Part shown: in pieces, positions 6,051 through 48,859 of the stretch | Position numbering within the stretch: position 1 is the stretch's first letter | Layout of the letters: each line of letters begins with the position of its first letter | Assembly: GCA_965112735.1 (NCBI GenBank) | Contig: OZ218952.1 | Span: 3,658,001-3,722,000, forward strand | Length of the DNA stretch: 64,000 bases | Direction of reading: 5' to 3' | Source of the DNA: Phaeosaccion multiseriatum | Taxonomy: Eukaryota > Protista > Ochrophyta, other classes | Translations under genes and position numbers: made by a program | The notes under the pieces: generated by a model | Told to the model about the DNA's origin: nothing | The model's input: only the letters and a program-made list of their open reading frames with translations | Databases searched by the model: none

Positions 6051-8180
6051 TTACTTTCCACCGCTCACCACCATCACCACCCTCCCCGGGTTGCGCTCAT
6101 CTTCCCACACGTCGACGCCCGCCGTCTCCTGCAAATAGGCCAGCACCCCGGGCTTGAGAACGCTGACGCCGTCCTCACTGCGTCGGCCTCGGCCTGTGAT
6201 GACCTTGATCTCAGCCCCCGGCTTTGCCTCTGAGAGCACGTGACGAAGCGCTGCCTTGCTCGTTCCCCTGCTGAACTCGTGTAAGTCCATCTCCTGCCCC
6301 CCTTTCCTCCAGTGATTGAAGACCCCTTGTGATACGGCCTCTGCGTACAGCTCGTCAGCAGCCTCCTCGTCTCCACCCTCCTGCACAGCGTCAATAGCGG
6401 CGCTGTAGCTGATCACATTTGGCTGGAGTGCTGCCGCCTTCATCTCACTCAACAGCTTCAGGGCCTCCAAGGGCTTTTTGTCGTTGCCACATGCATTAAT
6501 GGCTGCACTGTAGCTGATCACATTTGGCTGGAGTCCTACCGCCTTCATCTCACTGAAGAGCTTCAGGGCCTCCAAGTGGTTGTTGTCTTTGCCACATGCC
6601 GTAATGGCTGCACTGTAGCTGATCACATCTGGCTTGAGTCCTGCCGCCTTCATCTCACTCAATAGCTCCAGGGCCTCCACGCTGTTGTTGTCGTTGCCAC
6701 TCGCAGTAATGGCTGCATTATAGGTGATTTCATTGGGAGCAATTCCTACCTCCTTCATCTCCTTGAAGAGCTTCAGGGCATCCACGCTGTTCTTGTCGTT
6801 GCCACACGCAGTAATCGCTGCACTGTAGCTGATCACATCAGGCTTGTGTCCTGCCGCCTTCATCTCACTCAACAGCTTCAGGGCCTCCACGCTGTTGTTG
6901 TTCTTGCCACACGCAGTTATCGCTGCATTGTAGCTGATCACATCACGCTTAAGTCCTGCCGCCTTCATCTCACTCAATAGCTCCAGGGCCTCCACGCTGT
7001 TGTTGTCGTTGCCACTCGCAGTAATGGCTGCATTATAGGTGATTTCATTGGGAGCAATTCCTACCTCCTTCATCTCCTTGAAGAGCTTCAGGGCCTCCAC
7101 GCTGTTCTTGTCGTTGCCACACGCAGTAATCGCTGCACTGTAGCTGATCACATCAGGCTTGAGTCCTGCCGCCTTCATCTCACCCAACAGCTTCAGGGCC
7201 TCCACGCTGTTGTTGTTCTTGCCACACGCAGTAATGGCTGCACTGTAGCTGATCACATCAGGCTTAAGTCCTGCCGCCTTCATCTCACTCAACAGCTTCA
7301 GGGCCTCCACGCTGTTGTTGTCGTTGCCACATGCAGTAATGGCTGCATTATAGGTGATTTCATTGGGAGCAATTCCTACCTCCTTCATCTCCTTGAAGAG
7401 CTTCAGGGCCTCCACGCTGTTGTTGTCGTTACCACATGCAGTAATGGCTGCACTGTAGCTGACTACATTTGGCTTGAGACCTGCCGCCCTCATCTCCCTC
7501 AATAAACGCAATACTTCCACGTGTTGGTTGCTGGCCTTGGCGCAAGCGTTAATGGTGGAGTTGTAGCTGATTATATCGGGAGCAAGTCCTTCTGCCTTCA
7601 TCTCTTCCAGAAGGGCCAATGCCTCCATGTGTTGGGTGGCCTTGGCGCATGCGTTAATGGTGGAGTTGTAGCTGATTGCATTGGGAGCGAGTCCATCTGC
7701 CTTCATTTCCCTCAGTAAACCCATTGCCTCCATATGTTGGCTAGCCCTGGCGCATGCGTTGATGGCGGAGCTGTAGCTGATCACGTCTGGCCTGAAGCCT
7801 TCCTTCTTCATCTCAGCCAAGAGAACCAAAGCGCCCTTCCACCGCCCGCACTTCCCAATCGCGGTAATCGCAGCACTCAAACAGTACAGATCGGGCTTGA
7901 GGCCCTCTCGCCGTGCGCGCTCCAGAGTAGGTGCAACCTTCTTCCAATCCTTTCTCTTCCCCAGATCCTGGATCTCCTTCATAAGCCGTATCTGCCTCGA
8001 CTTGTCACTTCCCCTAGTAGAGAAGGACCATTGCGGCGGCAGCTGCTTCTGCTGATGGAGACAAGAGTCGGCACGCCGTTCAGCAGCGGTGCCTCCTACT
8101 GCTGCGGGTCCTTTTCTACCTCTGCCAATGCAGGAGGAGTAGCAGGTTCTGACCACCCCCCTCAACGATATCGCTCTCAT
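6051..8180 (-). CDS. PPR-SMR protein A (14 P-type PPR repeats plus C-terminal SMR nuclease-like domain), intronless
   Basis: 35-aa repeats VISYSAAITACG...EALKLLSEMKAAGLKPD; C-terminal MDLHEFS...VITGRGRRS...NPGRVV (SMR signature); Arg/Ser-rich N-terminus resembling a mitochondrial presequence. First ATG at 8180. Confidence 0.92.
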   Translation of the reverse strand: MRAISLRGVVRTCYSSCIGRGRKGPAAVGGTAAERRADSCLHQQKQLPPQWSFSTRGSDKSRQIRLMKEIQDLGKRKDWKKVAPTLERARREGLKPDLYCLSAAITAIGKCGRWKGALVLLAEMKKEGFRPDVISYSSAINACARASQHMEAMGLLREMKADGLAPNAISYNSTINACAKATQHMEALALLEEMKAEGLAPDIISYNSTINACAKASNQHVEVLRLLREMRAAGLKPNVVSYSAAITACGNDNNSVEALKLFKEMKEVGIAPNEITYNAAITACGNDNNSVEALKLLSEMKAAGLKPDVISYSAAITACGKNNNSVEALKLLGEMKAAGLKPDVISYSAAITACGNDKNSVEALKLFKEMKEVGIAPNEITYNAAITASGNDNNSVEALELLSEMKAAGLKRDVISYNAAITACGKNNNSVEALKLLSEMKAAGHKPDVISYSAAITACGNDKNSVDALKLFKEMKEVGIAPNEITYNAAITASGNDNNSVEALELLSEMKAAGLKPDVISYSAAITACGKDNNHLEALKLFSEMKAVGLQPNVISYSAAINACGNDKKPLEALKLLSEMKAAALQPNVISYSAAIDAVQEGGDEEAADELYAEAVSQGVFNHWRKGGQEMDLHEFSRGTSKAALRHVLSEAKPGAEIKVITGRGRRSEDGVSVLKPGVLAYLQETAGVDVWEDERNPGRVVMVVSGGK

Positions 8181-8635
8181 CAAGATTGATTCTTTGGTTA
8201 TAGGGATACTGAAAGGTAAATAAAAAGCAGCTGGTAAAAAGTATCGAAGTAAAAAGGTAGGCCCTGTGAGCCCTGTATCACCAACTCACGGACATGCGTG
8301 CATGCGCCCCCCCCCCGAAATCCGAAATCCCCACCACAACCCTTTCCAAAACCGCTATTTTTACGCCTGTTTTTCATTAGAGCGGGACAGTGATGGTCCC
8401 GTCCCACTTGTGCAGTATGGCGGGCTGCAGGAAGAGGAGAGTAAGGTGCAGAGAGGTGCGTTCAGGGACTGCTGAAGGGGGAACCAAAAAATGGGGGGTT
8501 GGCAGGCACGCCTCTCTGCTGTACTGCAAGCTTCAAACGTCAACGAGTGCCTAGTCTAGTTTCGGAGTTCCTACGACTACATCGTCCACCGCTTCTAACG
8601 AAGTACCCCCCCCCTTTCTTTTTTTTCCTCTCCAG

Positions 8636-17938: not shown

Positions 17939-20908
17939 TCAAACAACATGAGCTGAACCCAACAGAGTCTCTGGGTGCTGCTGCTGAGTCCGCCTCGACA
18001 CACCACGCGGTGGCTGCGGCGACTGCTGCTGCTGGTGGTGGTGGTGCTGCTGCTGCTGCCGCGGCAGGATGGCCTGGTCTTGCTGCTGTATGACCTGCTG
18101 CTGATGTAAGCCCTCGTGTGACAGCTGCTGCATCTGCATGTGATGTTGGGTAGTGCCTCCCCTCCCTCTGCCCCCTCCCCCCCCAGGAGCCGAGAAGCCC
18201 AGGAAGAAGGGCACAATGGGCGGTGGGGGTTTTCTCCTGCTCGGGAGGATGCTCCTCAGCAGCCCGACGTCGCCAAACACCTGCCGAAGAACCAATACCC
18301 AAGGCACAAGGCACAGGAGAGGAAAAACCATGCCACAGTAGAGCGGGGGGGAGGAGGAATCAAGGCACAAGCACGCACAAAAGAGGAGTGGGTGGGGAGG
18401 GGGGTGGGGGCGGGGAAGTGAATAGCTGAGAGATGTACGGAAGAAACAAAACCCCACACACACAGAGAGTGAGAGAGAGACGACACAGAGAGGGACAGCA
18501 AAGACAAGGAAGGTCGCGAGAATGTCGTTGCTCATTACTGTACCTGCTGAAAGTTTCGCTTGGCACCCATATCGAAAGGGTTCATGAAGAGCTCCCCTCG
18601 GTGCCGAGCCCGATTACGCTTGCTATTGTTCTCGTAAAAATCAATGGTGGTTTGGGCGGAGAGAATGAGGTAGACATGCCAGAAGAAGAGGATGGAGATG
18701 GCGATGCCCACAGAGAGAGTGAGCACAAAGGTGAAGATGACTGCGGACTGCTCGTCTCCGTGGATGCGGAGGCGCTTGACGTTGCGGTGGTCGAGACGGG
18801 CGTAGCGGAGGAAGTGGGGGAATGTGATGATCACACAGTACATGCAGCCGGTCCACAAGTAGGCGAGGAACAGCACGAAGTAGCGGTAGTTGTAGTAGCC
18901 GACGCAGTTGTTCATCCACGGGCAGTGGTGGTCCATCTGTGAGTGGTTGGATAGTAGTAGGAGTTGGGAGCAGAATGGTGCGGTGGGGAGAGGGGAGAGA
19001 GGGGGGGGGGAGGGGATGGAGAGGGAAGAGAGAGAAAAAGAGGGAGAAAAAGAAAGAGGGACAGAGACCGCGGCAGAGAGAGAGAGAGAGAATGAGAGAA
19101 GAAGATGAGACAAACAAAAAGTGAGGAGTGAAGCTGCACATGAGAAAGGACGAAGCCGATGTGAGAGAAAATGTCGAATGGGGTCTTTACGCTCACGGGG
19201 CGAGAACCCCGAGGGGGACTTGGGCACGCCGTCGCTATATTTACCACCTGTTGCTCTGGGCTGTCCAGTAGCGCTGCAGAGCCAAGGGGGAGGGCTGGGC
19301 AGTGACTCTAAAAAAGGCAGCCGCACACCAAAGGAAAGGACAGGAAGGGAAAAAGAAACCAATCCAACCCTTATCCCATTCATACAATAGGGGGGTGGGG
19401 TGTGCCCTGCACCAAAAGGACGGCGCTGTACTCCTCCCAGTCACAGACACGCATACACTTGCACACGCACCCACACGCACCCCCCCCCCACCCACACCCA
19501 CACCCACACCCACACCCACGTACACACACATAAACATACACGCAACACAACACAACATACACACACATATACACACATATGCACGCACACGCACACACGT
19601 ACACACACACACGTACACACACACGTACATTGAGGACGCATCCGTCGCACACTTGGCAGTGGTGCGTCCTCTGCGGCTTTGGCCCTCGGCACTTCTTGCA
19701 CGTGCGGCACTGCAGGTCCGGGTTCATGGCCATCGACTGCTCCCGCCGCTGCTGTACTAGCAACTGCTGCTGTTGCTGCCGCCTCCCAGGGGAGTCTTTC
19801 GACTCCTCTCCTCCCCTCCCTTCTTCCAGGAGGGGTAGGTCTTCGTCCGTCCCGGCTCCTCCTCCTCCTCCTCCTCCTCCTCCTCCTCCTCCTCCTCCTC
19901 CTCCTCCTCCTCCTCCTCCTCCTCCTCGTCGTCTTCCTCCCCCCTCTTGCTGATGCTGATACTGCTGCGCCTGCCGCACTCTCCGCCCTTCCTCCACCTC
20001 CCCCTCCCAATATTCGCTACTGCTGCCGCCATCACTGCTGCTATCGCTCTCCACCCCGTCCCAGTTCCTGCTCCTAAGACCGCTCCCCTCTTCGGTGCGA
20101 CCACCGCTTCTGCTGCCCGTGCTGCTGCCACTGCTGCCTCGACTGCTCGATAGACTGCCGTTACCACCCCCTCCCGTCGCCCCTGCTGCCACCAATGCCA
20201 TTTGCTCCAAGACTCGGTCAGGATTGCCTGGGCTGGTGAAAGCGCAATGGAAGTAATTCCAAAACAGATTGAAGGAGATGAAAGCCGCCAACGCGCCGTG
20301 GAGAAAGAACTGTTGCAGTGTACCACCACCACCAGAGGTGGAAGGAAGGAAGGAGGGAACGAGGAAAGGAAGGAAGGAAGGAAGGAACAAGGGAGGGAAG
20401 GAAGGAAGAAGGAGGGAAGGAAGGAAGGAAGGAAGGAAGGAAGGAAGGAACGAAGGAAGGAAGGAACGAAGGAAGGAGGAAGGAAGGGATGAACGGTGTT
20501 ACACACGGGGCAATCTTGAACCATTTCGACGGGCAACGTTTGTCGTTTCATGCCCTATATACTTCAAGACTCTCAGTGGGAATAGACGGCCTTGGTTGCC
20601 AGGCGGCCTGCCCGCGGTCCTTCTGTTCGCAAAGGTTGGCCACATCTGCGCCTTCTCAGGGCCACAAGGGGGAAGGGGTGAAGCACTTTCCATACCCACC
20701 ACCATCGTACCGAGAGAGAGTACTCGCGGGCCACGGCGGGGAGCACAAAGCTGAAAAACAGGTAGTCAATGGTGGAGATGAGGCCCGTCGCGAGCACGAG
20801 CAGCACGGGGCCCATGAGGCGCATGAACCAGTCGAAGGTGCAGCCGAGGCAGACCTGAAGGCACCATCGATCGGGGGCGGGTTTGGGTGGGGTGGGGTTG
20901 GGTGCCAT
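17939..20908 (-). CDS. DHHC-type S-palmitoyltransferase (ZDHHC16-like), multi-exon
   Basis: CKKCRGPKPQRTHHCQVCDGCVLN|MDHHCPWMNNCVGYYNYRYFVLFL, a TTID motif, NPFDMGAKRNFQQVFG and TM segments. A further 3' exon near 17500-17800 cannot be excluded. Confidence 0.92.
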
Positions 20909-21592
20909 CCATTATCATTCGCGAAGGGCGAGGGCGGAGGCGGGGGCCGCGGCGGGGGGTGGTAAGTATGGGGAGGGGGTCGGACAGGTAAGGGGTGGGC
21001 AGAGCGGGGAAAATGGGCTCCGGGAGGGGGGATCGGGGGGGGGTGAAAGTGAAATCAGTCAGGGCAAACGGAAGGGAACTGTCGCACAAAACAGCTCTCG
21101 ACGCCACCCCTTGTCCTCTCTGCAAAGAGGAGTCCCTGGCACATATCTCCTCCGTCTCAGTACCTCCACACACGACGCACCTGAAACCAATACATATACT
21201 CAAAGTTTTGATTGCTTCTCAGGGCCATGCGAAATCGCGTCCACACGGGCACCCGCGGTCTGGCACGCCGAGGCATCTCCTCCTCTTCGCTTCTCTTCGC
21301 GTTGTCTCTTCGCCGACACTCCTTACAACGCTGTATGCTCAAGGCCCGAGCATGTAGCGTGGAGAGAGAACAAAACAAGGGGGGAGGAGGGGGGCCGGTG
21401 GCAGATGGCAACTGACGGTCACAATTTCAGTTTCGTAGGTGATAAAGTAATAAGTCAATGATTCCCCACATCATCATCAAACGCACTTTTTGCCGCTCTC
21501 TTTCGGGGATAAATCGGGACGATATATGGTGGTCTAGCCCGACCCCCTATAGTTTACATTACACATTTTGTTAGGATTCGTTACGAAGAGAG

Positions 21593-32483: not shown

Positions 32484-33083
32484 TTGAGAGATTAAGTTAG
32501 GGTGAGAGAGTGAGCGAGTGAATGAGTGACTTTAGTGCTCACCGTGGAGTCTCCAAGAAGGAGAGGGCTTCTTCCTCGACGACGCCTTTGCCTGGGTGAG
32601 ACGACCACCATCTATCCCCTTGTGGGCCTGTGAATCTTTTGGTTCACATGAGAGCGAGAGCGCCGCCATCCTGCCTCCGGGTAGAAAAGACGCGGCAGAC
32701 AGACATGTGCGAATCTCCGGCCACGCGAGCCCTCCGGAGCTACTCAGAGCTACTCAGAGCTACTCAGAGCTACTCACGGCTCTACTACGTGCACCCCGCC
32801 ACCACCGTGGATCGCTCAGGCCAAACGAGAGGGGAGGCGAAGCGAATGTCGCAGCAGCAGCAACACCACCACGTCGACTCGGAAGCGCCACACGGAAGCA
32901 GCTCTCCCCCAAACTTCTTCAGGGCATCGCATATTGTATCGCCGCCAGGGATGGGGTAAAGTGGGCACTCAAAGTTTGTGGGGGGTCTCCACGAGGCTCT
33001 CCGGCTGCTGCACACACGCACCACTCCGGAAGATGATGGTGGTCGTCGTGTCAGGACAAATGCACCGTGGAACCGTGGTACAC

Positions 33084-36700: not shown

Positions 36701-37398
36701 TCGAGCTGGAGTTTGACGAGAACATGCGCTTCCTTCACACGAGGGGGGAGCTGAGCGCGCTGCAGGCTTTGTCCACTTTGGCGGAGGAGCATTCGTATCT
36801 GTGGCCCAAGTTCGCAGCAGGGAGGGCCTACAGCGCGTCGGCTCTTGACGCGCTTCTGAGCCAGGCGTTTCATCGGCCCAGTCGCATCGCATTGTTTGAG
36901 CAAATGCTGCAGCTCGGTCACCCCAACGTGGCAGTGAGTGGAGAGAGCAATGGAAGGGACCAATCAGCAGCTATCGCTGCGCGGGCCTCGCAGGGACAGC
37001 GGGCGGAAGGGGTGGGCTTCGAGCAGCAGGAGGAGCACAAGGAGGAGCGGTTGGAAGGGCCCGAAGGAGGGGACTATCAGCAGCAGCAGCAGCAGCAGCA
37101 GCGGCCGCAGGAGGAGGAGTTTGGCAAGGTTGAAAACCAGCAGGGGCAGCAGCAGGCAGGAGACTCCGTGGGCATCTACCAGTTTGAGGTACCTCAGTCC
37201 CTACTCGGCCACTGCTTTGGCGAGCTCTACCACGCGCTCATCATGCCGCCCATCCGCGCCACTCCCATCGGCCTGTACCGAGCCAAGGGAACCAGTCAGG
37301 CCCCCGAGCCCTACGTGTACACAGCTCCGAGAGCGGACACGGTACTGCACAAGGGGGACCTTGTGTTTGTGATGGGCCGGCCTGCGGAGCTTCCTTGA
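33724..37398 (+). CDS. BK/Slo-type (Ca2+-activated) potassium channel alpha subunit, intronless
   Basis: TM segments, pore LYYIIITLSTIGFGDVVP, RCK1 (RHIVVCG, YIRGSPLNSRDLQRA, AQSCLCPGWSALVANL), RCK2 (HLLVLG, PKFAAGRAY) and C-terminal PYVYTAPRADTVLHKGDLVFV. Confidence 0.93.
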   Translation: MNKRLLYDSEGEEEEVEHEDKDLYWLSLLGNEDKRNWCNLEQARKDVEVEIVHSNQRKLVRSGGGFSARAREAETRSTFNTALAEINATKLARLLPNPGTKREQEELALVVWRKAKWLEHHVIYNVCGVVLCTIACALYVYETYLPTFPQWGITFEEWLLFLFSVHFVVKLLGANDLLSFLFSGKSALLVLATIVPGMVVILDENENDPLNIGFLRALALSSFGQRLFDYKRLAISGVQRVGDNSATRLSILAQQRVLHRQILTLGIYVIVFAFVSAGIVIVIDHKSNGQSIDGIGPDTGVLRFNEALYYIIITLSTIGFGDVVPLSTAQQMTILAIISAFLVTIPVRVAMVALAHSRKGSRYAGKYSHDNVRERHIVVCGNVGFSSLLSCLQELFHADHGKAAMWLKVVVLSADEPSMGMVALMELPDYKDKVAYIRGSPLNSRDLQRARVQDAASVLVLVEKLARDTKKEDAHAMLMAISVLTHVQAQRRSGGGPRLLVELLNPNSALHIRSAGIRHVVSFDQLKLSMVAQSCLCPGWSALVANLVRSHSALPAQALQQGTWLGEYYLGATKTVFSTQLSPVFVGLPFSEVVATVYEQFELIIVAVEMHATGLVVINPEAHYEVELGDRALVLAESQADALSVWEFLGEAFARGEAGEEAALLESVGCKKLAAMNGQGYVESIGQNRLLNRCRRAPGPETLPDFFLVKAYLALFDSTRHLDPYEVYADYERARGFEPQVFAHREQASSAQAQAREDRPASAASEPAASSPWRESLRSFVSEVDALPEGIESAEVVDTDNNNASDGGGGSGLVDLRQRAAALLAKGGGGGGGGSGSSSRGISISSGTTFDTPLKDTRHLSSHLLVLGFPARPSHMEAFLRPLRRSDRLDLAARPSILFMSPKVDRLISCLQRLAQDEEGIDLSRIYVVPGHPMSQQDLINAGIERCKTVVCLSNVSQLVERPDEKDGLIDAEALMSFIKMELLLAPDAHFIVELEFDENMRFLHTRGELSALQALSTLAEEHSYLWPKFAAGRAYSASALDALLSQAFHRPSRIALFEQMLQLGHPNVAVSGESNGRDQSAAIAARASQGQRAEGVGFEQQEEHKEERLEGPEGGDYQQQQQQQQRPQEEEFGKVENQQGQQQAGDSVGIYQFEVPQSLLGHCFGELYHALIMPPIRATPIGLYRAKGTSQAPEPYVYTAPRADTVLHKGDLVFVMGRPAELP

Positions 37399-37821
37399 AG
37401 GTCGGCTGATTGCCTGGTAGCAGAGGATCAACCCAGCGGAATGGAATGGGTTGTGTATCATATGTACTATATAATAACGGGGGGCGCAGATTTTTTAGAC
37501 GAGTACAAAAGCATTTATGAGTACAAAAGCATTTTATTTTTTTAGAGAAACATTCGAAGGAAGAGGTAGAAATACGTTGATTTTAAATTCAAATAAATAA
37601 GTAGCAAAAGAGTGTGTGTGTGGAGTTGTGATCTTTTACGGAGTGCTTCGTTGTGTGCAGTCTTGAGCCCGGTCTGTAACTTTGGAGGGCATCATTGCGT
37701 GCGGGCACCCACCTCAGCTGCAATCTTCTTTCTCATCACAGTATCACTCGGACGACAGACATAAAGGGGGCAGGTCAGTAGCTTGAGATAAGAGTGTGAG
37801 GGGCGAAGTTCAGTTGATGGC

Positions 37822-40243
37822 GCGCCTCCTCCTCCTCCTCCTCCTCCTCCTCCTCCTCCTCCTCCTCCTCCTCCTCCTCCTCCTCCTCCTCCTCCTCCTC
37901 CTCCTCCTCCTCCTCCTCCTTCGTCACTCACTCACGCACACGCGCACTTACACACTCACTCACTCACGCACGCACGCACGCACTCACTCACTCACTCGGT
38001 CACGCACACGCGCACACGTGCACGTACACACTCGCTCACTTACTCACTCACTCACTCACTCGCGCACTTATGCACTCGCTCACTTCCTCACTCACTCACT
38101 CACTCAATCACTCACTCACTCAATCACTCACTCACAGAATCAATCACTCACACACTCACTCACACACACGCACTTGTGCACTCGCTCACTCAATCACTCA
38201 CTCAATCAATCACTCACACACTCACACACACACTCACACACTCACTCACTCACTCACTCACGCACACACGCACTTGTGCACTCGCTCACTCAATCACTCG
38301 CTCTCTCTCTCACTCACTCTCTCACTTACTCACGCGCGCACTCACTCACGCACGCACTCACTCACGCACTCACTCACGCACTCACTCACTCAATCACTCA
38401 ATCACTCCTTCACTCACTGACTCACTGACTCACTCACTCACTCACTCACTCACGCACACGCGCACTTATACACTCGCTCACTTATGCACTCGCTCACTCA
38501 CTCACTCACTCAAACAATCACTCACTCACTCACACTCACTCAATCACTCACTCAATCACTCACTCACGCACTCACGCACACGCGCACACGCCCACTTCTG
38601 GACTCGCTCACTCACCCACTCACTCACTCATTCATTCACTCAATCAATCACTCACACACTCACTCACACACACACACGCACTTGTGCAATCGCTTATTCA
38701 CTCACACAATCACTCACCCACTCACTCACTCACTTCCTCACTCACTCAATCACTCTTCCACTCACTCAATCACTCATTCACTCACTCACTCACTCACGCA
38801 CGCACGAACTCACTAACTCCCTCACTCACTCACGCACTCACTCACTCGCTCACTCAATCGTTCCCTCCCTCCCTCACTCACTCACTCACTCACTCACTCA
38901 CTCACTCACGACACACGCACATATGCAATCGCTCACTCACTCACGCATTCACTCACTCACTCACTCATGCACGCACGCACGCACTCATTCACTCACTCAC
39001 TCACTGACTCACTGACTCACTCACCCACTCACTCACGCACACGCGCACCTATGCACTCGCCCACTGACTCAGACCCTCACTCACTCACTCACTCACTCTC
39101 ACTCAATCACTTACGCACACACGCACGCACTCACTCACGCACTCACTCACTCACGCACACGCGCACCTATGCACTCCCTCACCCACTCACTCAATCACTC
39201 ACTCCCTCACTCACTCTCTCTCTCATTCACTCTCTCACTCACGCACGCACGATCTCACTAACTCCCTCACTCACTCACGCACTCACTCACTCACTCGCTC
39301 ACTCAATCTTTCCCTCCCTCACTCACTCTCACCCACTCACTCACTCAATCAATCAACCACTCACTCACTCACTCACGCATGCACGCATGCACGCACGCAC
39401 TCACTCACGCCCACGCGCACTTCTGCAGTTGCTAACTCACTCACTCACTCACTCACGACACACGCACATATGCAATCGCTCACTCACTCACGCATTCACT
39501 CACTCACTCACTCATGCACGCACGCACTCATTCACTCACTCACTCACTGACTTCACTAACTCACTCCCTCACTCCCTCATTCCCTCATTCATTCACTCGC
39601 CACGCACTCATTCACTCAAGCATACGCGCACTCATGCAATCTGTAGCGTCGGTGAACCTTCGCTAACTAACTGAGACTCACACTCTTCGTCTGGTTACTC
39701 CCACCCTTCGTAGGAGAGAGAGACGCCAAAATATTATGGATACTGTAGAACGAGAGTAGAGTTTATGAAACGGTGCCTCGGGTTTCCGATTTGGCATGAA
39801 CGAATGGCCTACTGCACACTTCGCCCACTCTTTCACTCACTCACGCACCCACTCACTCGCCCACTGACCCACTCACTCTCTTATTCCCGTACGCACTCAT
39901 TCACTCGCTCACTCACTCTTTCACTCACTCACGTACTCTCCAACCCATGCACACGCGCACTCGCCCATTCTTTCAACCACTCACTCGCACAGTCACTCGC
40001 TCGCTCACTTTCCGACCGACTCACGCACCAGCCCTTGCACTCATTCGCTCACTCACTCACTCACTCACTCACTCACTCACTCACTCACTCACTCACTCAC
40101 TCACTCACTCACTCACTCACTACGCACGCCCGCAGGCACGCACTTAGTCACTCGCTCGCTCACTTTCCCACCAACTCTCGCACCAACACTTGCCTCATTC
40201 ACTCACTCAATCACGCAGGCACGCACATACTCACTCACTCACC
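37822..40243. repeat. (CCT)n followed by two long degenerate (CACT)n/(GAGT)n arrays
   Basis: About 100 bp of (CCT)n, then CACT-based arrays at ~37925-39630 and ~39830-40243, with recurring ACGC variants. Confidence 0.95.
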
Positions 40244-41281
40244 CAACAGCCGCCGCCCCGAAGGCAGATTGTCCAGTCTCGAGCCGAAGAGCAACCTTCC
40301 CTGACCAGCCTGGAAGAGGAGTCTGCTGTTGTTGCTGGTGGTGCTGGTGGTGCTGGTGGTGGTGGTCCGCATCTCCTTTCCTCGTCTTGTTCCGTCTTGG
40401 AAATTCGATTCCATCCCCCCCCCATCTTTTTATTCGAAGTTGTGCACTTCGAAGGCGGCGGCAATAGCAGCAGCGCGAGCAGCGGAGGGGTCATGGCAAG
40501 TTTGGCACGAACACCTCGAGGACGGCACAGAGGGGCCATGATTGCTGTCAACGTCGCTGATCGTTTCCATTTCCAGCCTCTCCATCGACTAAGAGTCGCC
40601 AACACACTTTGGCGCCTCCTCCTCAACCTGTGCACTTCCTCCTCCTCTCCGCTCTCTTCCTGCCTCCTTCATACCATCCCCCTCTTCTTTACCGTTGCCT
40701 TCTTTCCCCCTCCTGTTTCCCGGCATGCTCGTGGATAACCTCTACACCAAACCCGTTGCATCGCGGGGCAAAACACCAACCCTTGCACAGCCCTCTATTG
40801 CCTTGGGAATCGCAGATTTCCGTGCCTTGGGAATCGCAGATTTCCGTGCTCAAAGTACTCCCGGAGGATAACGGTCGAAACTCCTCCGCAGAGTCTCCCG
40901 CTTTACCAAGATGTCTTTTCCAAAGGAAGAAGAGGACAGAAGACCTTCTGTATTCCACAGCCGCCACCACTCAATCTTTCTCTCCCTCTCCGTGATGCTG
41001 GCCGATGAGCCAAGGAGTATCACCGAGGAGGAAGATTATGACAAGAAGAAGGAGCAGGAGAAAGAAGGGGAGTGGATGTGCACGTGTTGGTACCCCAACC
41101 AAACTCACAGCTGATAACACAACACAGTCATAAATAAAGTCCGCCCGCGGCGCCGGCGGCTCTAAATACTCTACAGGGGCAGCTCTCGCTCTCGGAAAGA
41201 GGAAGAGCATTAGGGTAAATATAGCATAGGGGCACACCCCAATGGAAAGAGAGGTTTGAGAGCAGTAGAACGGCAGATACA

Positions 41282-42994
41282 ATGCTGATGATGAGAGCAA
41301 TGTCGTTGAGGGGAGTGGCCAGAGCGTGCTACTCCTCTTGCATTGGCAGGAATAGAAGAGGACCCGCGCCCGCAGTAGGAGGCACCGCTGCTGAACGGCG
41401 TGCCGACTCTTCTCTCCATCAGCAGAAGCAGCTGCTGCAGCAATGGTCCTGCTACTCTACTAGGGGAAGTGACAAGTCGAGGCAGATACGGCTCATGAGG
41501 GAGATCCAAGATCTGGGGAGGAGCAAAGACTGGAAGAGGGTGGCACCTACTCTGGAGCGCGCACGGCGAGAGGGCCTCAAGCCCAACCAGTACTGTTTGA
41601 ATGCTGCTATTTCCGCGATTGGGAAGTGCGGGCGGTGGAAGGGCGCTTTGGCTCTCTTGGCAGAGATGAAGGAGGAAGGCATCAGGCCAAACGTGATCAG
41701 CTACAACTCCACCATGAATGCATGCGCCAGGGCTAGCCAACATGTAGAGGCAATGGATTTACTGAGGGAGATGAAGGCAGAAGGACTCGCTCCCGATGCA
41801 ATCAGCTACAACGTCACCATTAATGCATGCGCCCGGGCCAGCCAACACGTGGAGGCAATGGGTTTACTGAGGGAGATGAAGGCAGAAGGACTCTCTCCCG
41901 ACGTAATCAGCTACTGCGCCACTATTAACGCATGCGCCAGGGCCAACCAACACGTGGGGGCATTGGAATTACTGAGGGAGATGAAGGCAGAAGGAGTCGC
42001 TCCCAGTCAAATCAGCTACAATGCAACAATTGGCGCTTGCGCCAAGGCCGGCCAACCCGTGGAGGCAATGGGCTTACTGAGGGAGATGAAGGCGGAAGGA
42101 CTCGCTCCGGATGTAATCAGCTACAGCTCCACCATTGACGCATTCGCTAAGGCCAAGAACCAACACGTGGAGGCATTGGTTTTACTGAGGGAGATGAAGG
42201 CGGAAGGACTCAAGCCAAATGTGATCAGCTACGGTGCAGCGATTACTGCATGTGGCAACGACAACAACAGCGTGGAGGCGCTGAACCTCTTAAGTGAGAT
42301 GAAAAAGGAAGGACTCTCTCCCAATGTGATAATATACAGTGCAGCAATTTCTGCATGTGGCAACGACAACCACAGCACGGAGGCCCTGATGCTATTCAGT
42401 GAGATGAAGGCGGCAGGTCTCAAGCCAGATGTGATCAGCTACAGTGCAGTGATTACAGCGTGTGGCAACGACAACCACGGCATGGAGGCCCTGATGCTAT
42501 TCAGTGAGATGAAGGCGGCGGGTCTCAAGCCAAATGTGATCAGCTACAATGCAGCGATTACTGCATGTGGCAACGACAACAACAGCGTGGAGGCCCTGAA
42601 GCTATTCAGTGAGATGAAGGCGGCGGGTCTCAAGCCAGATTTGATCAGCTACAGTGCAGCGATTGATGCTCTGCAGGAGGGAGGCGACGAGGAGGCTGCT
42701 GACGAGCTGTACGCAGAGGCCGTATCGAAAGGGTTCTTGAATCACTGGAAAAAACTGGGGCAGGAGATGGACTTGCACGCATTCACCAGGGGAACGAGCA
42801 AGGCAGCGCTTCGTCACGTGCTCTCAGTGGAGAAGGTGGAGGGTGAGATCATAGCAATCACAGGCGGCGAGGATGGCGACAGCGTTCTCAAGCCCGCTGT
42901 GCTGGCCTATTTGCAGGAGAGAGCAGGAGTGGAAGTGTGGGCAGACTATCACAACCCGGGGAGGGTGGTGATGCGGGTTAGTGGAGGGAAGTAG
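41282..42994 (+). CDS. PPR-SMR protein B (10 PPR repeats; SMR with 4-aa deletion in the TGRG loop), intronless
   Basis: Same architecture as A; the SMR reads MDLHAFT...IAITGGEDGDS instead of ITGRGR(R/G)SEDGVS. Confidence 0.92.
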   Translation: MLMMRAMSLRGVARACYSSCIGRNRRGPAPAVGGTAAERRADSSLHQQKQLLQQWSCYSTRGSDKSRQIRLMREIQDLGRSKDWKRVAPTLERARREGLKPNQYCLNAAISAIGKCGRWKGALALLAEMKEEGIRPNVISYNSTMNACARASQHVEAMDLLREMKAEGLAPDAISYNVTINACARASQHVEAMGLLREMKAEGLSPDVISYCATINACARANQHVGALELLREMKAEGVAPSQISYNATIGACAKAGQPVEAMGLLREMKAEGLAPDVISYSSTIDAFAKAKNQHVEALVLLREMKAEGLKPNVISYGAAITACGNDNNSVEALNLLSEMKKEGLSPNVIIYSAAISACGNDNHSTEALMLFSEMKAAGLKPDVISYSAVITACGNDNHGMEALMLFSEMKAAGLKPNVISYNAAITACGNDNNSVEALKLFSEMKAAGLKPDLISYSAAIDALQEGGDEEAADELYAEAVSKGFLNHWKKLGQEMDLHAFTRGTSKAALRHVLSVEKVEGEIIAITGGEDGDSVLKPAVLAYLQERAGVEVWADYHNPGRVVMRVSGGK

Positions 42995-43622: not shown

Positions 43623-45569
43623 ATGCTGCGAAGCGCTCTGGTCAAAGTCGGGGCGACGGCTGTCTGCAGGGGAGCAGGCCGGGCGGCAGCAGTCGCTAGA
43701 ACAGGGGCAGGAGCAGGAGCAGGATCCACAGCACGGGCATGCCGTGCTCAGGGTGAGTCGCTGAAGCTGCTTTCCCTTGAATAGGTCCACTCGTTTGCTC
43801 ACGACGCTCTCGTTTCCCCCTCTTGTCTGTGTAACCTCCTGCACTTACAGGTCGATGCATGTCCGGCCTGGTGGAGAAGCTGCAAAGCTCAATGACAGAT
43901 GTACCTTTGGCCGAGGCAGTGTGCTTCAAAAAGCATAACCTAAAGTTTACAAGAGCCGATATTACCAAGTGAGGAAGGTCTTGGGATGAAGGAGAATAAA
44001 CTGAGCTGCGGCCCTTAAGTCGCCCCCCATCCTAGTAACGCTCTTCCGAACACTTACTCACGCCATCACGCAATCGCGCACTCCCTTCCCTCTCCCATGC
44101 TCTCCCCTACTCTGCCTTCCCTCCCCTCAACTCTCTACGTAAAAGGTACGGAGACGCGGTGGCTTGCGGGCTCTTGGAGTTGGCCGTCCCCGGCGAAACA
44201 GTGGCCTCATTCTTAGGAGAGGGAACGGAGAAAAGCTTGATGCAGGTAAGAACAGAACCATAGCAAACCACACGTAGAGATTTGATGACTGGTGTCTGCC
44301 TCCTCATTAGGAAACGGTTTGGTTGTCCAGGAGAGGGCATACAGATGTAAATATGCCCTTCGGACGGCACCCCCCCTCTCCACTCGTACCACTCCTTCTG
44401 CATGGGTGGTAACCAACCAAACTATTCCCCCCTGTGTCTTCTTCAAGGCACCCCTCCCGCCCTCACCCACCCCTGTGTGGTTGCCCTCCTCTCCTCCTCC
44501 TCCTCCTCCTCCTCCTCCTCCTCCTCCTCCTCCTCCTCCTCCTCCTCCTCCTCCTCCTCCTCTTCCTCCTCCTCCTCCTCCCCCCCCTCTTCATCCTCAT
44601 CCTTCCCCCCCTCCCCCCCCGTCCTCCGCCTCTGTGCTGCGTCATGCGTGTCTCAGATTGCCGCTGCCAAGAGCGGACTAGTGCTGGCAGAAGCATCCCC
44701 CGCCATAGCTGCCAGCAAGGAGGGTATCGCCAAGGTTCTGCAGCAATCGAAGGCCGCTATTGTGCTGGTAGAAGCGGCAGGTGAGGAGCAGGAGCAGGAG
44801 GAAGAGGAGGCAGAGGAGGGGGAGGAGGAGGAGAGAAGAAGAAGAAGAAGAAGAAGAAGAAGGAGGAGGAGGAGGAGGAGGAGGAGGAGGAGAGGAGGAG
44901 GAGGAGTAAGGGGAGAGAAGGAAGAGGAGGAGCAGAAGGAGGAGAACAAGAAAGAGAAGGGATATCTGAATTTGTCGGTAGTCGCGGTGCCGCCACGCCT
45001 TGCACGTGAATCAACCCCCTCCCAACCCTCTCCCCTCCAAATCTCATCGATTTAATTTAACTCACAATTTGTTGCCTGCTTCGTCCCCCATCCATCACCC
45101 TCCTATCTTCCTACCCGCCTACCTACCCACCTACCTGTCTGCCTACTTGCCTACCTGCCTACCTACCTACGTACCTACCCACCTACTTATATTTCACCTA
45201 CACCCCTCCCCAGACGTGCCAATGCTCAAGGAGGCCGTGGCTGAGTTGAAGAGCTTTGACGACAAACTCGGCCTTCCTTTCCGATCGGAGGCGTTCCCAG
45301 GCCTCCGTGCTGCCGTTCACACGGGCTGGGACTCCCTCCCGGGTGTGACAAATTTCAAGCACATTCTCATATACGACCCCCAACCCGCGTCGCCCCTCAA
45401 GCCGCCGTCGGAGATTCCAGATACCACACCCTTGGCCATGCCCTTTTCGGGCTCGGGGAGCTCTCCGGCGGCGGCCAAGACGCTCACACACGCAGACGTT
45501 CTCAAGGGAGGGGGCAAAGCTTGGCCCACGGTGGCGGCTTTAGTAGACCACAAGTATATCGAGGTGTGA
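43623..45569 (+). CDS. Mitochondrion-targeted protein with a truncated AMP-binding (acyl-CoA synthetase N-terminal-like) domain, multi-exon
   Basis: Presequence-like MLRSALVKVGATAVCRGAGRAAAVAR; spliced exons PLAEAVCFKKHNLKFTRADITK|YGDAVACGLLELAVPGETVASFL..SLMQ|IAAAKSGLVLAE..|FRSEAFPGLRAAVHTGWD..TLTHADVL. Confidence 0.6.
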
Positions 45570-46504
45570 CGTCACGAGTGAATTTGTAAAAGGGAAAGAG
45601 GGGTGATGGCGTCCGCCCGTCGCTTTCTTTTTTTTCTCTTTTTTTTTGGGCATGAATATCGACGGGAAGCACGGCACGGCGGCGAAGGGGCTTTTTACCA
45701 CTCACCACCTTTCACAGCGGCAGAGGCGGAGCAGCAGAAGCAGCAGCAGCAGCAGCAGCGACAGCAGAAGTAGCAGCGGCACAGGCAGCAGCAGCAGCAG
45801 CAGCAGCAGCACATCTGCTCTTGATGTTGGGGCCGATTTGTATGTATGGGTAGGCTGGCGGGAAGAAGAAAAGAGTTGTCGGGGCTCTTAACAGCTTCGG
45901 CAGCATTTCAGCAGCAGAAGGGCAGCTCGCTCCGCGCTTCCGGGGACTCTGCGGCTTGCACACTAGCTGCCGCATCAATTCTATTCCGTCCTGCGTTGGC
46001 AACAGCAGCAGCAGCAGCAGCATCAGCAGGAGAGGCAGTAGTTGGTGACACGGCAGCAAGCAGGAGGGCGATGTTTACAAGGGGCGACAAGTTTCTGTGT
46101 TTGGGGGCTGTGTTTGGGGGCTGTCCTTGGCTCCAGCCCAGAGGGGTCGTGCTGCGGCAGTCGCCCCTCCCTTCAATATACATGCACATATTACGTAACT
46201 TACTGCGTCAGGGTCGTTTTAAATAAGAAGGATTGAAGGACACGTGTTTTTCTCCCCCCCCTCACCCCGCTCCCCGCTCATCGGCCAGCATCACGGCGAA
46301 TGAGGAGAGAAGGAGGAGACCCAAAAAAAAAAAAGGAATCACACCTATTAAGTCAATAAAGTCCGCCCGCGGCGGCCGGCGGCTCTAAATACTCTACAGG
46401 GGCGGCTCTCGCTCTCGGAAAGAGGAAGAGCATTAGGGTAAATATAGCATAGGGGCACACCCCAATGGAAAGAGAGGTTTGAGAGCAGTAGAACGGCAGA
46501 TACA

Positions 46505-48859
46505 ATGCTGATGATGAGAGCAATGTCGTTGAGGGGAGTGGCCAGAGCGTGCTACTCCTCTTGCATTGGCAGGAATAGAAGAGGACCCGCGCCCGCAGTA
46601 GGAGGCACCGCTGCTGAACGGCGTGCCGACTCTTCTCTCCATCAGCAGAAGCAGCTGCCGCAGCAATGGTCCTGCTACTCTACTGGGGGAAGTGACAAGT
46701 CGAGGCAGATACGGCTCATGAGGGAGATCCAAGATCTGGGGAGGAGCAAAGACTGGAAGAGGGTGGCACCTACTCTGGAGCGCGCACGGCGAGAGGGCCT
46801 CAAGCCCAACCAGTACTGTTTGAATGCTGCTATTTCCGCGATTGGGAAGTGCGGGCGGTGGAAGGGCGCTTTGGCTCTCTTGGCAGAGATGAAGGAGGAA
46901 GGCATCAGGCCAGACGCGATAAGCTACAGCTCCGCCATAAACGCATGCGCCAGGGCTAGCCAACATGTAGAGGCAATGGATTTACTGAGGGAGATGAAGG
47001 CACAAGGACTCGCTCCGGATGCAATCAGCCACAACGCCGCCATTAATGCATGCGCCAGGGCCAGCCAACACGTGGAGGCAATGGGTTTACTGAGGGAGAT
47101 GAAGGCAGAAGGACTTGCTCCCGATCATATCAGCTACAATACCACCATTTATGCATGCGCCAGAGCCAGCCAACACGTGGAGGCATTGGGTTTACTGAGG
47201 GAGATGAAGGCAGAAGGACTCGCTCCCGATCATATCAGCTACAATGCAGCCATTACTGCATGTGGCAAGGCCAACAACCAACACGTGGAGGCAATGGGCT
47301 TACTGAGGGAGATGAAGGGAGAAGGACTCACTCCCGATCATATCAGCTACAGCTCCACCATTGATGCATGCGCCAGAGCCAGCCAACACATGGAGGCAAT
47401 GGGTTTACTGAGGGAGATGAAGGGGGAAGGACTGGCTCCCAATACAATCAGCTACAACTCCACCATTAATGCATGCGCCAAGGCCAGCCAACACGTGGAG
47501 GCATTGGGTTTACTGAGGGAGATGAAGGCAGAAGGACTCACTCCCGACGTAATCAGCTACAGCTCCACCATTAACGCATGCGCCCGGGCCAGCCAACACG
47601 TAGAGGCATTGGGTTTACTGAGGGAGATGAAGGCACAAGGACTTGCTCCCGATACAGTCAGCTACAGTAATGCCATTTCTGCATGTGGCAATGACAACAA
47701 CAGCGTTGAGGCTCTGAAGCTGTGGAGTGAGATGAAGGCGGTAGGTCTCAAGCCAAATGTAATCAGCTACAGTGCAGCCATTACTGCATGTGGCAACGAC
47801 AACAACAGCGGGGAGGCCCTGAAGCTGTTGAGTGAGATGAAGACGGCAGGTCTCAAGCCAAATGAGATCAGCTACAGTGCAGCCATTACTGCGTGTGGCA
47901 ACGACAACAACAGCGTGGAGGCCCTGAAGTTACTGAGTGAGATGAAGGCGGCAGGATTCAAGCCTGATGTGATCAGCTACAGTGCAGCCATTACTGCGTG
48001 TGGCAACGACAACAACAGCGTGGAGGCCCTTAAGCTATTCAATGAGATGAAGGCGGCAGGACTCAAGCCTGAAGTGATCAGCTACAGTGCAGCCATTACT
48101 GCGTGTGGCAACGACAAGAACAGCGTGGAGGCCCTGAAGTTACTGAGTGAGATGAAGGCGGCAGGATTCAAGCCTGATGTGATCAGCTACAGTGCAGCCA
48201 TTACTGCGTGTGGCAACGACAACAACAGCGTGGAGGCCCTTAAGCTATTCAATGAGATGAAGGCGGCAGGACTCAAGCCTGAAGTGATCAGCTACAGTGC
48301 AGCCATTACTGCGTGTGGCAACGGCAAGAACAGCGGGGAGGCCCTGAAGTTACTGAGTGAGATGAAGGCGGCAGGATTCAAGCCTGATGTGATCAGCTAC
48401 AGTGCAGCCATTACTGCGTGTGGCAACGACAACAACAGCGTGGAGGCCCTTAAGCTATTCAATGAGATGAAGGCGGCAGGACTCAAGCCAAATGTGATCA
48501 GCTACAAAGCCGCTATTGACGCTTTGCAGGAGAGTGGCGACGAGGAGGCTGCTGACGAGCTGTACGCAGAGGCCGTATCACAAAGGGTCTTGAATCACTG
48601 GAAGAAAGGGGGGCAGGAGATGGACTTACACGACTTCAGCAGGGGAACGAGCAAGGCAGCGCTTCGTCACGTGCTCTCAGAGGCGAAGCCGGGGGCTGAG
48701 GTCAAAGTCATCACAGGCCGAGGCCGAGGTAGTGAGGACGGCGTCAGCGTTCTCAAGCCCGCGGTGCTGGCCTACTTGCAGGAGAGGCCGGGCGTCGAAG
48801 CATGGGAAGACGAACGCAACCCGGGGAGGGTGGTGATGCGGGTCAGTGGTGGTAAGTAG
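46505..48859 (+). CDS. PPR-SMR protein C (16 PPR repeats plus intact SMR), intronless
   Basis: Same architecture; SMR MDLHDFS...VITGRGRGS...NPGRVV; 5' region almost identical to gene B. Confidence 0.92.
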   Translation: MLMMRAMSLRGVARACYSSCIGRNRRGPAPAVGGTAAERRADSSLHQQKQLPQQWSCYSTGGSDKSRQIRLMREIQDLGRSKDWKRVAPTLERARREGLKPNQYCLNAAISAIGKCGRWKGALALLAEMKEEGIRPDAISYSSAINACARASQHVEAMDLLREMKAQGLAPDAISHNAAINACARASQHVEAMGLLREMKAEGLAPDHISYNTTIYACARASQHVEALGLLREMKAEGLAPDHISYNAAITACGKANNQHVEAMGLLREMKGEGLTPDHISYSSTIDACARASQHMEAMGLLREMKGEGLAPNTISYNSTINACAKASQHVEALGLLREMKAEGLTPDVISYSSTINACARASQHVEALGLLREMKAQGLAPDTVSYSNAISACGNDNNSVEALKLWSEMKAVGLKPNVISYSAAITACGNDNNSGEALKLLSEMKTAGLKPNEISYSAAITACGNDNNSVEALKLLSEMKAAGFKPDVISYSAAITACGNDNNSVEALKLFNEMKAAGLKPEVISYSAAITACGNDKNSVEALKLLSEMKAAGFKPDVISYSAAITACGNDNNSVEALKLFNEMKAAGLKPEVISYSAAITACGNGKNSGEALKLLSEMKAAGFKPDVISYSAAITACGNDNNSVEALKLFNEMKAAGLKPNVISYKAAIDALQESGDEEAADELYAEAVSQRVLNHWKKGGQEMDLHDFSRGTSKAALRHVLSEAKPGAEVKVITGRGRGSEDGVSVLKPAVLAYLQERPGVEAWEDERNPGRVVMRVSGGK

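Follow-up and report, generated by a model that had tools for sequence, protein, structure and literature searches.

A multi-copy family of PPR-SMR genes with recombining repeat arrays in the alga Phaeosaccion multiseriatum

The stretch of 64 kb on contig OZ218952.1 of Phaeosaccion multiseriatum that was analysed here (the window) contains three uninterrupted single-exon open reading frames encoding PPR-SMR proteins, named A, B, and C. In our judgement they are rather likely to be functional nuclear genes of a recombining, lineage-specific, multi-copy subfamily of P-class PPR-SMR proteins, which would serve as organellar, probably mitochondrial, RNA-binding factors. Normally a genome has only a few conserved PPR-SMR genes, and what the SMR domain does is still debated. 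As an expansion the family is unusual, but the protein type is known and the system is not of a new kind; uniform PPR arrays and PPR-SMR proteins have already been described in heterokonts and dinoflagellates. With tens of very similar copies it would amount to a natural experiment in the evolution of PPR specificity, in which cassettes can be seen to duplicate, copies to exchange sequence, and the TGxG loop of the SMR domain to be present in some natural variants and absent from others.

Gene structure and repeat arrays

The three reading frames were found where the original prediction had placed them (Table 1), including the ATG of A at position 8180; the entry in the ORF list begins one codon further upstream, at a TTG. 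B and C form a tandem with a distance of 3.5 kb, and A is located 33 kb away on the opposite strand. The homology of A to B and C begins at the ATG and ends at the stop codon, and B and C additionally share 150 bp upstream. A tblastn search of the 64-kb window with C as query found no further copies or fragments of the family. Both junctions of C, 5' and 3', recur unchanged in X5, which is another sample of this organism. A search for RNA runs found none.

Table 1. Positions of the PPR-SMR genes and their elements in the window
Feature	Positions	Strand	Basis
Gene A, PPR-SMR, 709 aa, single ORF	6051..8180	-	ORF, Pfam, repeat parsing
A SMR domain, DLH and TGRG motifs	6054..6311	-	Pfam Smr (24.1 bits), alignment
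A cap repeat (VISYSAAIDAVQEGGDEEAADELY...)	6312..6416	-	Parsing
A repeats 1-14 (1 first-type, 3 class-1, 10 class-2)	6417..7889	-	Parsing
A higher-order repeat: 3.4 copies of a 315-bp unit (3 PPRs), 91-95% nt identity	6437..7502	-	Tandem Repeats Finder, identity
About 150 bp upstream of B, common to C upstream region	41133..41281	+	tblastn/sequence comparison; contig depth 2x single-copy
Gene B, PPR-SMR, 570 aa, single ORF	41282..42994	+	ORF, Pfam, repeat parsing
B repeats 1-10 (1+5+4)	41588..42640	+	Parsing
B SMR domain, 4-residue deletion in TGxG loop (ITG----GEDG, near 42865)	42746..42991	+	Pfam Smr (14.6 bits), alignment
About 150 bp upstream of C, common to B upstream region	46355..46504	+	Sequence comparison, contig depth
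Gene C, PPR-SMR, 784 aa, single ORF	46505..48859	+	ORF, Pfam, repeat parsing
C repeats 1-16 (1+7+8)	46811..48493	+	Parsing
C higher-order repeat: 4 copies of a 210-bp unit (2 PPRs), 97-99% nt identity among the last 3	47658..48506	+	Tandem Repeats Finder, identity
C SMR domain	48599..48856	+	Pfam, sequence similarity, AF2 model, Foldseek

The order of the elements is the same in A, B, and C, i.e., a presequence, a degenerate repeat 0, the first repeat, the class-1 block followed by the class-2 block, the cap repeat, and the SMR domain. Repeat 0 is formed by the final 35 aa of the N-terminal part and precedes the repeat that had originally been counted as the first. Parsing in the 35-aa register yielded 14, 10, and 16 PPR repeats for A, B, and C, respectively, each plus the cap repeat; these array lengths stem from the assembly alone, the contigs kept from public runs being short and not spanning the arrays. 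The numbers agree with those proposed before, as do the shared leader, first repeat, cap, and SMR domain, and the class splits of 3+10, 5+4, and 7+8 after the first repeat (1+3+10, 1+5+4, and 1+7+8 with it).

The arrays consist of tandem 35-aa motifs without L or S variants, as is typical of the P class, and the register is strict, with one 36-aa repeat per gene. The Pfam matches to PPR_2, PPR_3, PPR, and PPR_1 have E values of 1e-61 to 1e-141, the very strong ones 1e-99 to 1e-141, and an AF2 model predicts paired helices throughout. The hydrophobic core positions are invariant among the repeats. Positions 9-13 read NACAR or NACAK in class 1 and TACGN or TACGK in class 2, whereas Trp17 is missing from all repeats but the first. 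Tandem Repeats Finder reported a period of 105 bp and the higher-order periods of A and C. The repeats had been called near-identical, which is true for the recent block duplicates of both genes (repeats 12 and 14 of C are identical across 105 nt), but not for the classes as a whole, within which the mean identity is 75-77% at the amino acid level and 83-85% at the nucleotide level.

The SMR domain and the presequence

The C-terminal domain has a real SMR fold, as modelled for C, and to judge by the alignment A and C retain this fold together with the two signature motifs. Measured against the gathering score of Pfam Smr (PF01713) of 25.7 bits, C lies above the threshold (31.1 bits), A just below it (24.1 bits), and B under it (14.6 bits). 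The xDxH motif reads MDLH in all three proteins, and the second motif is ITGRG in A and C and ITG----GEDG in B; the DxH and (T/V)GxG motifs of the family align with those of algal PPR-SMR proteins. A separate AF2 model, which was built with an alignment and covers the tail of C, has a pLDDT of 85 and the structural elements in the expected order. The SMR domain of C is similar in sequence to the Smr domain of N4BP2, which was also the best Foldseek match of the model (E 4.9e-5, TM 0.68). MutS2 Smr (TM 0.73) and YdaL followed at weaker E values (overall TM 0.62-0.73), and ribosome-bound MutS2 Smr (8r55, 8qpp) and the plastid RNA polymerase chain 8r6s_G each matched with an E value around 0.02-0.05. 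Homologous cap+SMR modules are present in 270 representative clusters, and those that carry names come from Chrysoparadoxa, Chrysophaeum, Aureoumbra, and Prorocentrum.

By analogy with plant SOT1 the SMR tail of A and C could cut RNA; alternatively, like the SMR domains of other proteins, it could be non-catalytic or associate with the ribosome. The suggestion that the whole set carries a built-in nuclease was too broad. The fold in the model of C and the motifs in A and C conform to it, but B lacks the TGxG loop, and therefore a nuclease is not retained in all copies.

The first 40 aa of the presequence contain 8 R/K versus 1-2 D/E, and no hydrophobic signal peptide was found in the N-termini, in which no 12-aa window has a mean hydropathy above 1. 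In an alga with a secondary plastid, such an arginine-rich and acid-poor presequence lacking a signal peptide suggests import into the mitochondrion and not into the plastid. Judged by composition alone, the N-termini resemble mitochondrial presequences, and the proteins are probably mitochondrial, as had been predicted. An upstream exon that carries a signal peptide may lie beyond the reading frame as read.

Copy number, recombination and the code residues

The read depth was about 515 at the single-copy flank and 1024 in the stretch common to B and C. It was 20,000-32,500 in the leader region and 34,600-39,800 in the SMR region, which is 40-77 times the single-copy flank, a rough value because it was summed over contigs and overlapping short contigs may inflate it. 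In addition, 12-30 distinct variant contigs were present per site. The depth suggests that the family, already proposed to be multi-copy, is large and comprises tens of paralogues at 90% nucleotide identity or more.

C is a mosaic with a B-like 5' end and an A-like SMR domain. Its 5' part is 99.3% identical to B at the nucleotide level, whereas the identity of its cap+SMR region is 92% to A versus 86% to B. Furthermore, very recent block duplications have occurred, of three repeats in A and of two repeats in C. Mosaic and duplications bear out the view that the family evolves fast. Unequal crossing-over would duplicate blocks of two or three repeats within the arrays, while exchange between paralogues would homogenise the coding sequence only, which would generate mosaics like C and leave the flanks unrelated. 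New codes would result from reshuffled repeat cassettes and from single G/A transitions that exchange AGT and AAT at codon 5 and GAT and AAT at codon 35. The family evolves by recombination and not by point mutation only. The leader (omega 0.37) and the cap+SMR region (omega 0.30-0.44) are under purifying selection. In the repeat arrays 194 non-synonymous and 92 synonymous changes were counted, which with a rule-of-thumb 3:1 ratio of sites corresponds to an omega of roughly 0.7; this high value is also compatible with relaxed constraint.

If the PPR code of land plants applies, the arrays would most likely bind a short, single-stranded organellar RNA rich in A, U, and G, with each repeat reading one base via its residues 5 and 35. 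The pairs of these residues, identical to those listed in the original prediction, are SD,SN,ND,NN,SN,ND,SD,SN,ND,ND,SN,ND,SN,SN in A, NN,ND,ND,CS,ND,SN,GN,SD,SN,ND in B, and ND,SD,ND,ND,ND,SN,ND,SD,SN,SN,SD,SE,SD,SE,SD,SN in C. ND, SN, SD, and NN combine S/N at position 5 with D/N at position 35 and are interconvertible by single G/A transitions. The target strings proposed earlier depend on a code whose calibration comes from land plants, and the reading of 5 among the 40 pairs (CS, GN, SE, SE, and NN read as Y) is uncertain; SE, CS, and GN have no assigned base. The predicted targets of the freshly duplicated blocks are periodic, AUG-AUU-AUA in A and G?G?GA in C. Such periodicity is improbable in ordinary organellar RNA, and therefore specific RNA contacts may be limited to other parts of the arrays.

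Among the closest repeat pairs, residues 5 and 35 account for 17% of the non-synonymous changes versus 5.7% expected (p = 8e-5). Position 5 ranks first and position 35 joint second, tied with position 1, and positions 6, 13, 18, and 25 approach them. The expected excess variation at the code residues does exist, at about 3-fold over uniform, but it is modest and not exclusive, and by itself it does not demonstrate an arms race. In contrast, the comparison of the arrays with TALE repeats could not be upheld, because only 12-13% of the differences between repeats are found at positions 5 and 35, and within-class identity is far from complete.

Competing explanations and known systems

The genes were originally thought to form a diversifying, Rf-like arsenal of sequence-specific RNA endonucleases, in which an arms race against RNA viruses or selfish ORFs of the mitochondrion would select for new 5/35 codes. 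The size, partial clustering, and recombination of the family, the high ranks of positions 5 and 35, and the intact SMR motifs of A and C are in agreement with this idea, and SOT1 of plants shows that RNA cutting by a PPR-SMR protein is possible (cited in PMC12787238). However, every PPR array that reads a non-homopolymeric RNA must vary at positions 5 and 35, so the pattern is unspecific, and the tie with position 1 weakens it further. B is otherwise conserved despite the lost TGxG loop. In addition, ND, SN, SD, and NN are also the four commonest pairs among the 80 relatives examined, drawn from a best-hit list in which several algal lineages are represented. We regard this explanation as distinctly unlikely. 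It is less unlikely, albeit still improbable, that the proteins are ordinary organellar expression factors, i.e., stabilisers, translation activators, or processing helpers like PPR53, ATP4, PPR-SMR1, and GUN1, in which the SMR domain is no site-specific nuclease and the uniformity reflects concerted evolution. The loop loss tolerated in B, the weak structural matches to ribosome-bound MutS2 Smr and 8r6s_G, and the purifying selection on leader and SMR domain would fit. The roles reported for plant PPR-SMR proteins in organelles are in the stability, translation, and editing of RNA and in the splicing of introns, whereas endonuclease activity is cited for SOT1 (PMC12787238; abstract of PMC6793435). 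However, tens of near-identical paralogues contrast with the 1-5 PPR-SMR genes per dinoflagellate species given in PMC12787238, and the very recent block duplications and mosaics indicate a fast turnover that is atypical of fixed housekeeping factors.

A largely neutral or decaying expansion, in which duplication and gene conversion would have produced copies of little function, many of them on the way to pseudogenes, is very unlikely. The high omega of the repeats, the SMR motif deletion in B, and the periodic predicted targets point in this direction, but all three reading frames (570-784 codons) are intact, leader and cap+SMR are constrained, and the hydrophobic core of the repeats is invariant. 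A bolder version of the preferred reading, a recombining family of organellar RNA-binding factors, has only a slim chance: the alga could keep its tens of PPR-SMR genes as a repertoire that shuffles cassettes, in which recombination of the two repeat classes and single transitions at codons 5 and 35 would continually supply an active SMR nuclease with new RNA specificities, and which could police mitochondrial transcripts (selfish ORFs, mitoviruses). If true, the repertoire would correspond in algae to the Rf-like genes of plants, with the nuclease already built in, and scaffolds for designer PPR proteins could be taken from it.

The RFL clusters of flowering plants are likewise composed of multi-copy, intronless P-class PPR genes, with probably mitochondrial products, duplication and recombination; their clustering and the elevated change at their base-specifying residues may have a parallel in the tandem of B and C and in the 5/35 excess. 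For RFL proteins, diversifying selection and the link to mitochondrial sterility ORFs are documented, whereas the 5/35 excess is modest here. RFL proteins are not known to have an SMR domain. A uniform scaffold with specificity from two residues is shared with designer or consensus PPR proteins and TALE effectors. However, differences between TALE or designer repeats are almost confined to the specificity residues, while 87-88% of the differences lie elsewhere in the present arrays. Naturally uniform PPR scaffolds are of interest for the engineering of RNA tools.

PPR-SMR proteins are a small subset of the plant PPR family (PMC3858433). The nearest known proteins are the plant and algal PPR-SMRs (SOT1/PPR53, GUN1, pTAC2, SVR7/ATP4, PPR-SMR1, and heterokont and dinoflagellate proteins), and the cap+SMR region of the family is homologous to that of proteins from the four genera named above. 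The differences are the tens of copies by depth instead of a few, arrays of two cassette types with recent block duplications, and the missing TGxG loop of B. The literature records PPR-SMRs from heterokonts as well as uniform arrays of the SACEK type (PMC3858433, PMC12787238). SACEK-PPR arrays, including PPR-SMRs, are known from heterokonts and dinoflagellates, algae whose plastids derive from red algae (Safonov & Berdieva 2025, summarised in PMC12787238). They share with the present arrays consecutive consensus-like 35-aa repeats in which the turn at positions 9-13 is conserved as x-A-C-x-x. An assignment to SACEK-PPR proper was rejected: the motif is N/T-A-C-A/G-R/K/N instead of S-A-C-E-K, with only A10-C11 shared, and the conserved downstream Trp is confined to the first repeat. 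The motifs suggest that the arrays are a derived variant related to SACEK-PPR, with two derived cassette classes and a shared leader that are specific to this family. The arrays of the public relatives P0001, P0012, P0020, and P0002 reach a similar uniformity, with a mean repeat identity of 0.58-0.66 versus 0.58-0.63 in A, B, and C.

Gene anatomy and the SMR tail

The window is characterized by a G+C content of 52-63%, numerous microsatellites and long uninterrupted ORFs. The intronless genes A, B and C encode proteins that match PPR_2 of Pfam with E-values of 1e-99 to 1e-141 and, parsed in a 35-residue register, have an identical order of parts (see table). The parse returned the same repeat counts as the original prediction, i.e., 14 (A), 10 (B) and 16 (C), the same division into first repeat, class-1 and class-2 repeats (1+3+10, 1+5+4 and 1+7+8, respectively), and 40 of 40 identical pairs of residues 5 and 35, which predict the bound base. 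The three genes and their anatomy are real. A tblastn search with C across the window revealed no copy or fragment beyond A, B and C. Both ends of gene C are present without differences in a second sample of the same organism. The public runs are stored as short contigs, so that array lengths are those of the assembly, and the exact repeat number in the 210-bp blocks of C may reflect an assembly artefact.

Genes A, B and C, the parts of their proteins in N- to C-terminal order, and other features of the window
Feature	Position	Strand or gene	Description
13-C run	6000-6050	-	31 nt past gene A stop codon
Gene A ORF	6051-8183	-	709 residues from ATG
DHHC palmitoyltransferase ORF	18535-19383	-	
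Long ORF	23584-30645	-	2353 codons, uninterrupted, several trinucleotide repeats
Potassium channel ORF	33724-37398	+	single ORF, BK/Slo-type, calcium-activated
(TCAC)n microsatellite	37924-39618 and 39833-40242		about 1.7 kb and 0.4 kb, GC skew -0.67; about 1 kb upstream of gene B
Gene B ORF	41282-42994	+	570 residues from ATG
Gene C ORF	46505-48859	+	784 residues from ATG
RING-finger ORF	49023-50540	-	directly downstream of gene C, convergent
TIG-domain ORF	53757-56102	-	
Leader	N-terminal	A, B, C	about 62-67 residues
Repeat 0	after leader	A, B, C	degenerate
First repeat	after repeat 0	A, B, C	own type, …AIGKCGRWKGAL…
Class-1 block	after first repeat	A, B, C	…INACARASQHVEAMGLLREM…
Class-2 block	after class-1 block	A, B, C	…ITACGNDNNSVEALKLLSEM…
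Cap repeat	after class-2 block	A, B, C	…AIDALQEGGDEEAADELY…
Tail	C-terminal, after cap	A, B, C	82-86 residues

The tail is an SMR domain, which is intact in A and C but not in B. When the tails were scanned alone with Pfam Smr, that of C scored 31.1 bits and thus exceeded the gathering score (25.7), whereas A (24.1 bits) and B (14.6 bits) remained below it. Human N4BP2, whose Smr domain has been solved, aligns with the stretch VITGRGxxSxxGVSVLKPAVLAYL, and its Smr domain is the best PDB match of a model of the C tail (E 4.9e-5, TM 0.68); the MutS2 Smr domain (TM 0.73) and YdaL come next, with weaker E-values. Modelled at full length, C forms an uninterrupted PPR solenoid, and its first 55 residues are disordered. 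A profile search of 1.84 billion representative proteins yielded 270 relatives of the cap and SMR region (best E 9.5e-21), the named ones from Chrysoparadoxa, Chrysophaeum, Aureoumbra and Prorocentrum. A word-indexed protein search with this region alone gave no match, and metagenome scans with the cap+SMR and the SMR alignments gave pattern matches but no confirmed relative. In the alignment with the named algal relatives the xDxH motif is present in A, B and C and the (T/V)GxG motif in A and C, while a four-residue deletion in B has left ITG----GEDG in its place. Gene B is intact despite this loss, and therefore the TGxG loop is dispensable for the intactness of the gene.

Copy number, selection and exchange among paralogues

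Positions 45500-49500 were overlaid with contigs from a deeply sequenced run of this organism (see table), and 12-30 distinct contigs carry variant sites. Summing contig depth gives rough values, which overlapping short contigs may inflate; even so, the family probably comprises tens of members with at least 90% nucleotide identity. Pieces with about 90-93% similarity are present in a related organism and in some plant-associated metagenomes.

Summed contig depth in and around gene C in the deep run
Region	Depth	Relative to flanks
Single-copy flanks	about 515	1x
130-bp stretch upstream of C, common to B	1024	2x
Leader region	20,000-32,500	about 40-63x
SMR region	34,600-39,800	about 67-77x
Class-1 repeats	up to 248,000	about 480x

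The leader, repeat 0 and the cap+SMR region are under purifying selection, with omega values of 0.37 for leader and repeat 0 (A versus B/C) and of 0.30-0.44 for cap+SMR. Over the first 102 codons, nucleotide identity between B and C is 99.3%, yet the cap+SMR region of C is 92% identical to A, but only 86% to B; by these identities gene C is a mosaic. In a tblastn-based comparison within the window the homology between A and B/C spans exactly the region from ATG to stop codon, about 150 bp upstream are additionally common to B and C, and the 3' flanks of the three genes have no similarity. As dS of the coding ends is only 0.15-0.2, co-duplicated flanks ought to remain recognisable. They are absent, and therefore the pattern would be best explained by gene conversion among paralogues that is restricted to the coding sequence. 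The CDS-limited homology had also suggested an origin as retrogenes, which was rejected because neither a poly(A) trace nor a shared UTR was found and because the mosaic favours gene conversion. Tandem Repeats Finder detected higher-order periods of 315 bp in A and 210 bp in C. Identity is 91-95% among the three-repeat blocks of A and 97-99% among the last three two-repeat blocks of C, and there is no difference between repeats 12 and 14 of C across 105 nt, which indicates very recent array growth via block duplication. The existence of a multi-copy, recombining PPR-SMR family is well supported.

Code residues and putative function

The variability of the code residues was analyzed in three ways. 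According to per-position entropy, 5 and 35 belong to a set of about twelve positions that vary and mostly lie at the surface (1, 5, 6, 9, 13, 15, 18, 22, 24, 25, 29-30, 32-33, 35), and the hydrophobic core of the repeats has zero variation. On a minimum spanning tree of all 37 class-1 and class-2 repeats, 14 non-synonymous changes fell on position 5 and nine on position 35, compared to 14, 12 and 11 at the non-code positions 1, 30 and 22, respectively, and ten each at positions 6, 13, 15, 25 and 33. Between the closest repeat pairs, i.e., those with at most ten nucleotide differences, the three highest counts were found at positions 5 (nine), 35 (seven) and 1 (seven), and positions 5 and 35 received 17% of the 94 non-synonymous changes, versus 5.7% expected for an even distribution (p = 8e-5). 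The roughly three-fold excess at these positions is real. The arrays are nevertheless far from the predicted TALE-like pattern, because only 12-13% of the differences between repeats of one class are at positions 5 and 35 and mean identity is 75-77%. In addition, neighbouring repeats must read different bases, and therefore such an excess is expected of any functional PPR array. Relaxed constraint on the repeats is a serious partial explanation: they show 194 non-synonymous versus 92 synonymous changes, i.e., an omega of roughly 0.7 with a rule-of-thumb 3:1 ratio of sites. A code switch takes a single G/A transition, between AGT and AAT at codon 5 and between GAT and AAT at codon 35.

The first 40 residues of A, B and C contain eight Arg/Lys versus one or two acidic residues, mean hydropathy of the N-termini is below 1 in every 12-residue window, and each ATG is preceded by an in-frame stop at a distance of 22-39 codons. 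In algae with secondary plastids, proteins destined for the plastid require an ER-type signal peptide, and the low hydropathy together with the upstream stops argues that A, B and C have none. From its composition, the N-terminus is likelier to be a mitochondrial presequence. A search for RNA runs returned only four runs of unspecified kind, which also cover intergenic DNA and are therefore probably DNA.

The proteins would be imported into an organelle, probably the mitochondrion, and bind short A/U/G-rich single-stranded RNA via residues 5 and 35, the predicted strings being those of the original prediction. The arrays have almost no C-specifying pairs, consistent with an AT-rich organellar target. 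In A and C the SMR tail may cleave RNA nearby, as is reported for plant SOT1; alternatively, it could have a non-catalytic or ribosome-associated role. Specificity might shift through cassette duplication, exchange among paralogues and single transitions. For the blocks that arose by recent duplication the predicted targets are periodic, AUG-AUU-AUA in A and G?G?GA in C, and this makes it doubtful that every repeat engages a base. It is plausible that A and C are sequence-specific RNases; nothing directly supports the proposal that the family diversifies as a defence against viruses or selfish ORFs. A-U-G-A occurs in the targets predicted for A and C, and A-?-G-A in that predicted for B (repeats A5-A8, C6-C9 and B6-B9). 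A start-codon reader was considered and rejected, because the register of the core relative to the class-1/class-2 boundary differs among the three genes and because a code of essentially three letters would produce such a core by chance in about one protein in eight. The common core is probably due to chance.

Comparison with known families and neighbouring features

PMC3858433 describes PPR-SMRs from land plants, green algae, brown algae and diatoms, and PMC12787238 reports one to five per species in dinoflagellates. The latter also summarises the 'SACEK' PPRs of dinoflagellates, heterokonts, cryptophytes and haptophytes (Safonov and Berdieva, 2025), in which consensus-like repeats follow one another in runs; PPR-SMRs are among them. 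Proteins of this type are the best public relatives of C (P0001, P0012, P0020 and P0002). None exceeded 49% identity in a full-length protein search, and hence the organism's own proteome is absent from the searched collection. Their mean repeat-to-repeat identity of 0.58-0.66 equals that of the whole arrays here (0.58-0.63); the median is 0.31 over 80 relatives from the best-match list, in which ND, SN, SD and NN are the four commonest pairs of residues 5 and 35. Therefore, uniform arrays and the S/N x D/N four-way code are not peculiar to this genome. What is unusual is the expansion of the SMR-bearing form to tens of copies, with two derived cassette classes, a shared leader and very recent block duplications. 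A literature search for PPR and PPR-SMR expansions in stramenopiles, brown algae and eustigmatophytes revealed no report of such an expansion. The environmental proteins P0001 and P0012 combine an N-terminal RRM-like region and a very uniform SACEK-type array with a C-terminal DYW-deaminase-like end (HxE…CxxCH), so that the uniform PPR scaffold is coupled there to another effector domain.

Among the neighbouring ORFs, the sole Pfam matches of the 2353-codon ORF are weak ones to an AAA-type ATPase, near residues 1835-2042. The potassium channel ORF contains RCK, BK_channel_a and ion channel domains, and its nearest Atlas clusters are rich in oomycetes, which fits a stramenopile host.
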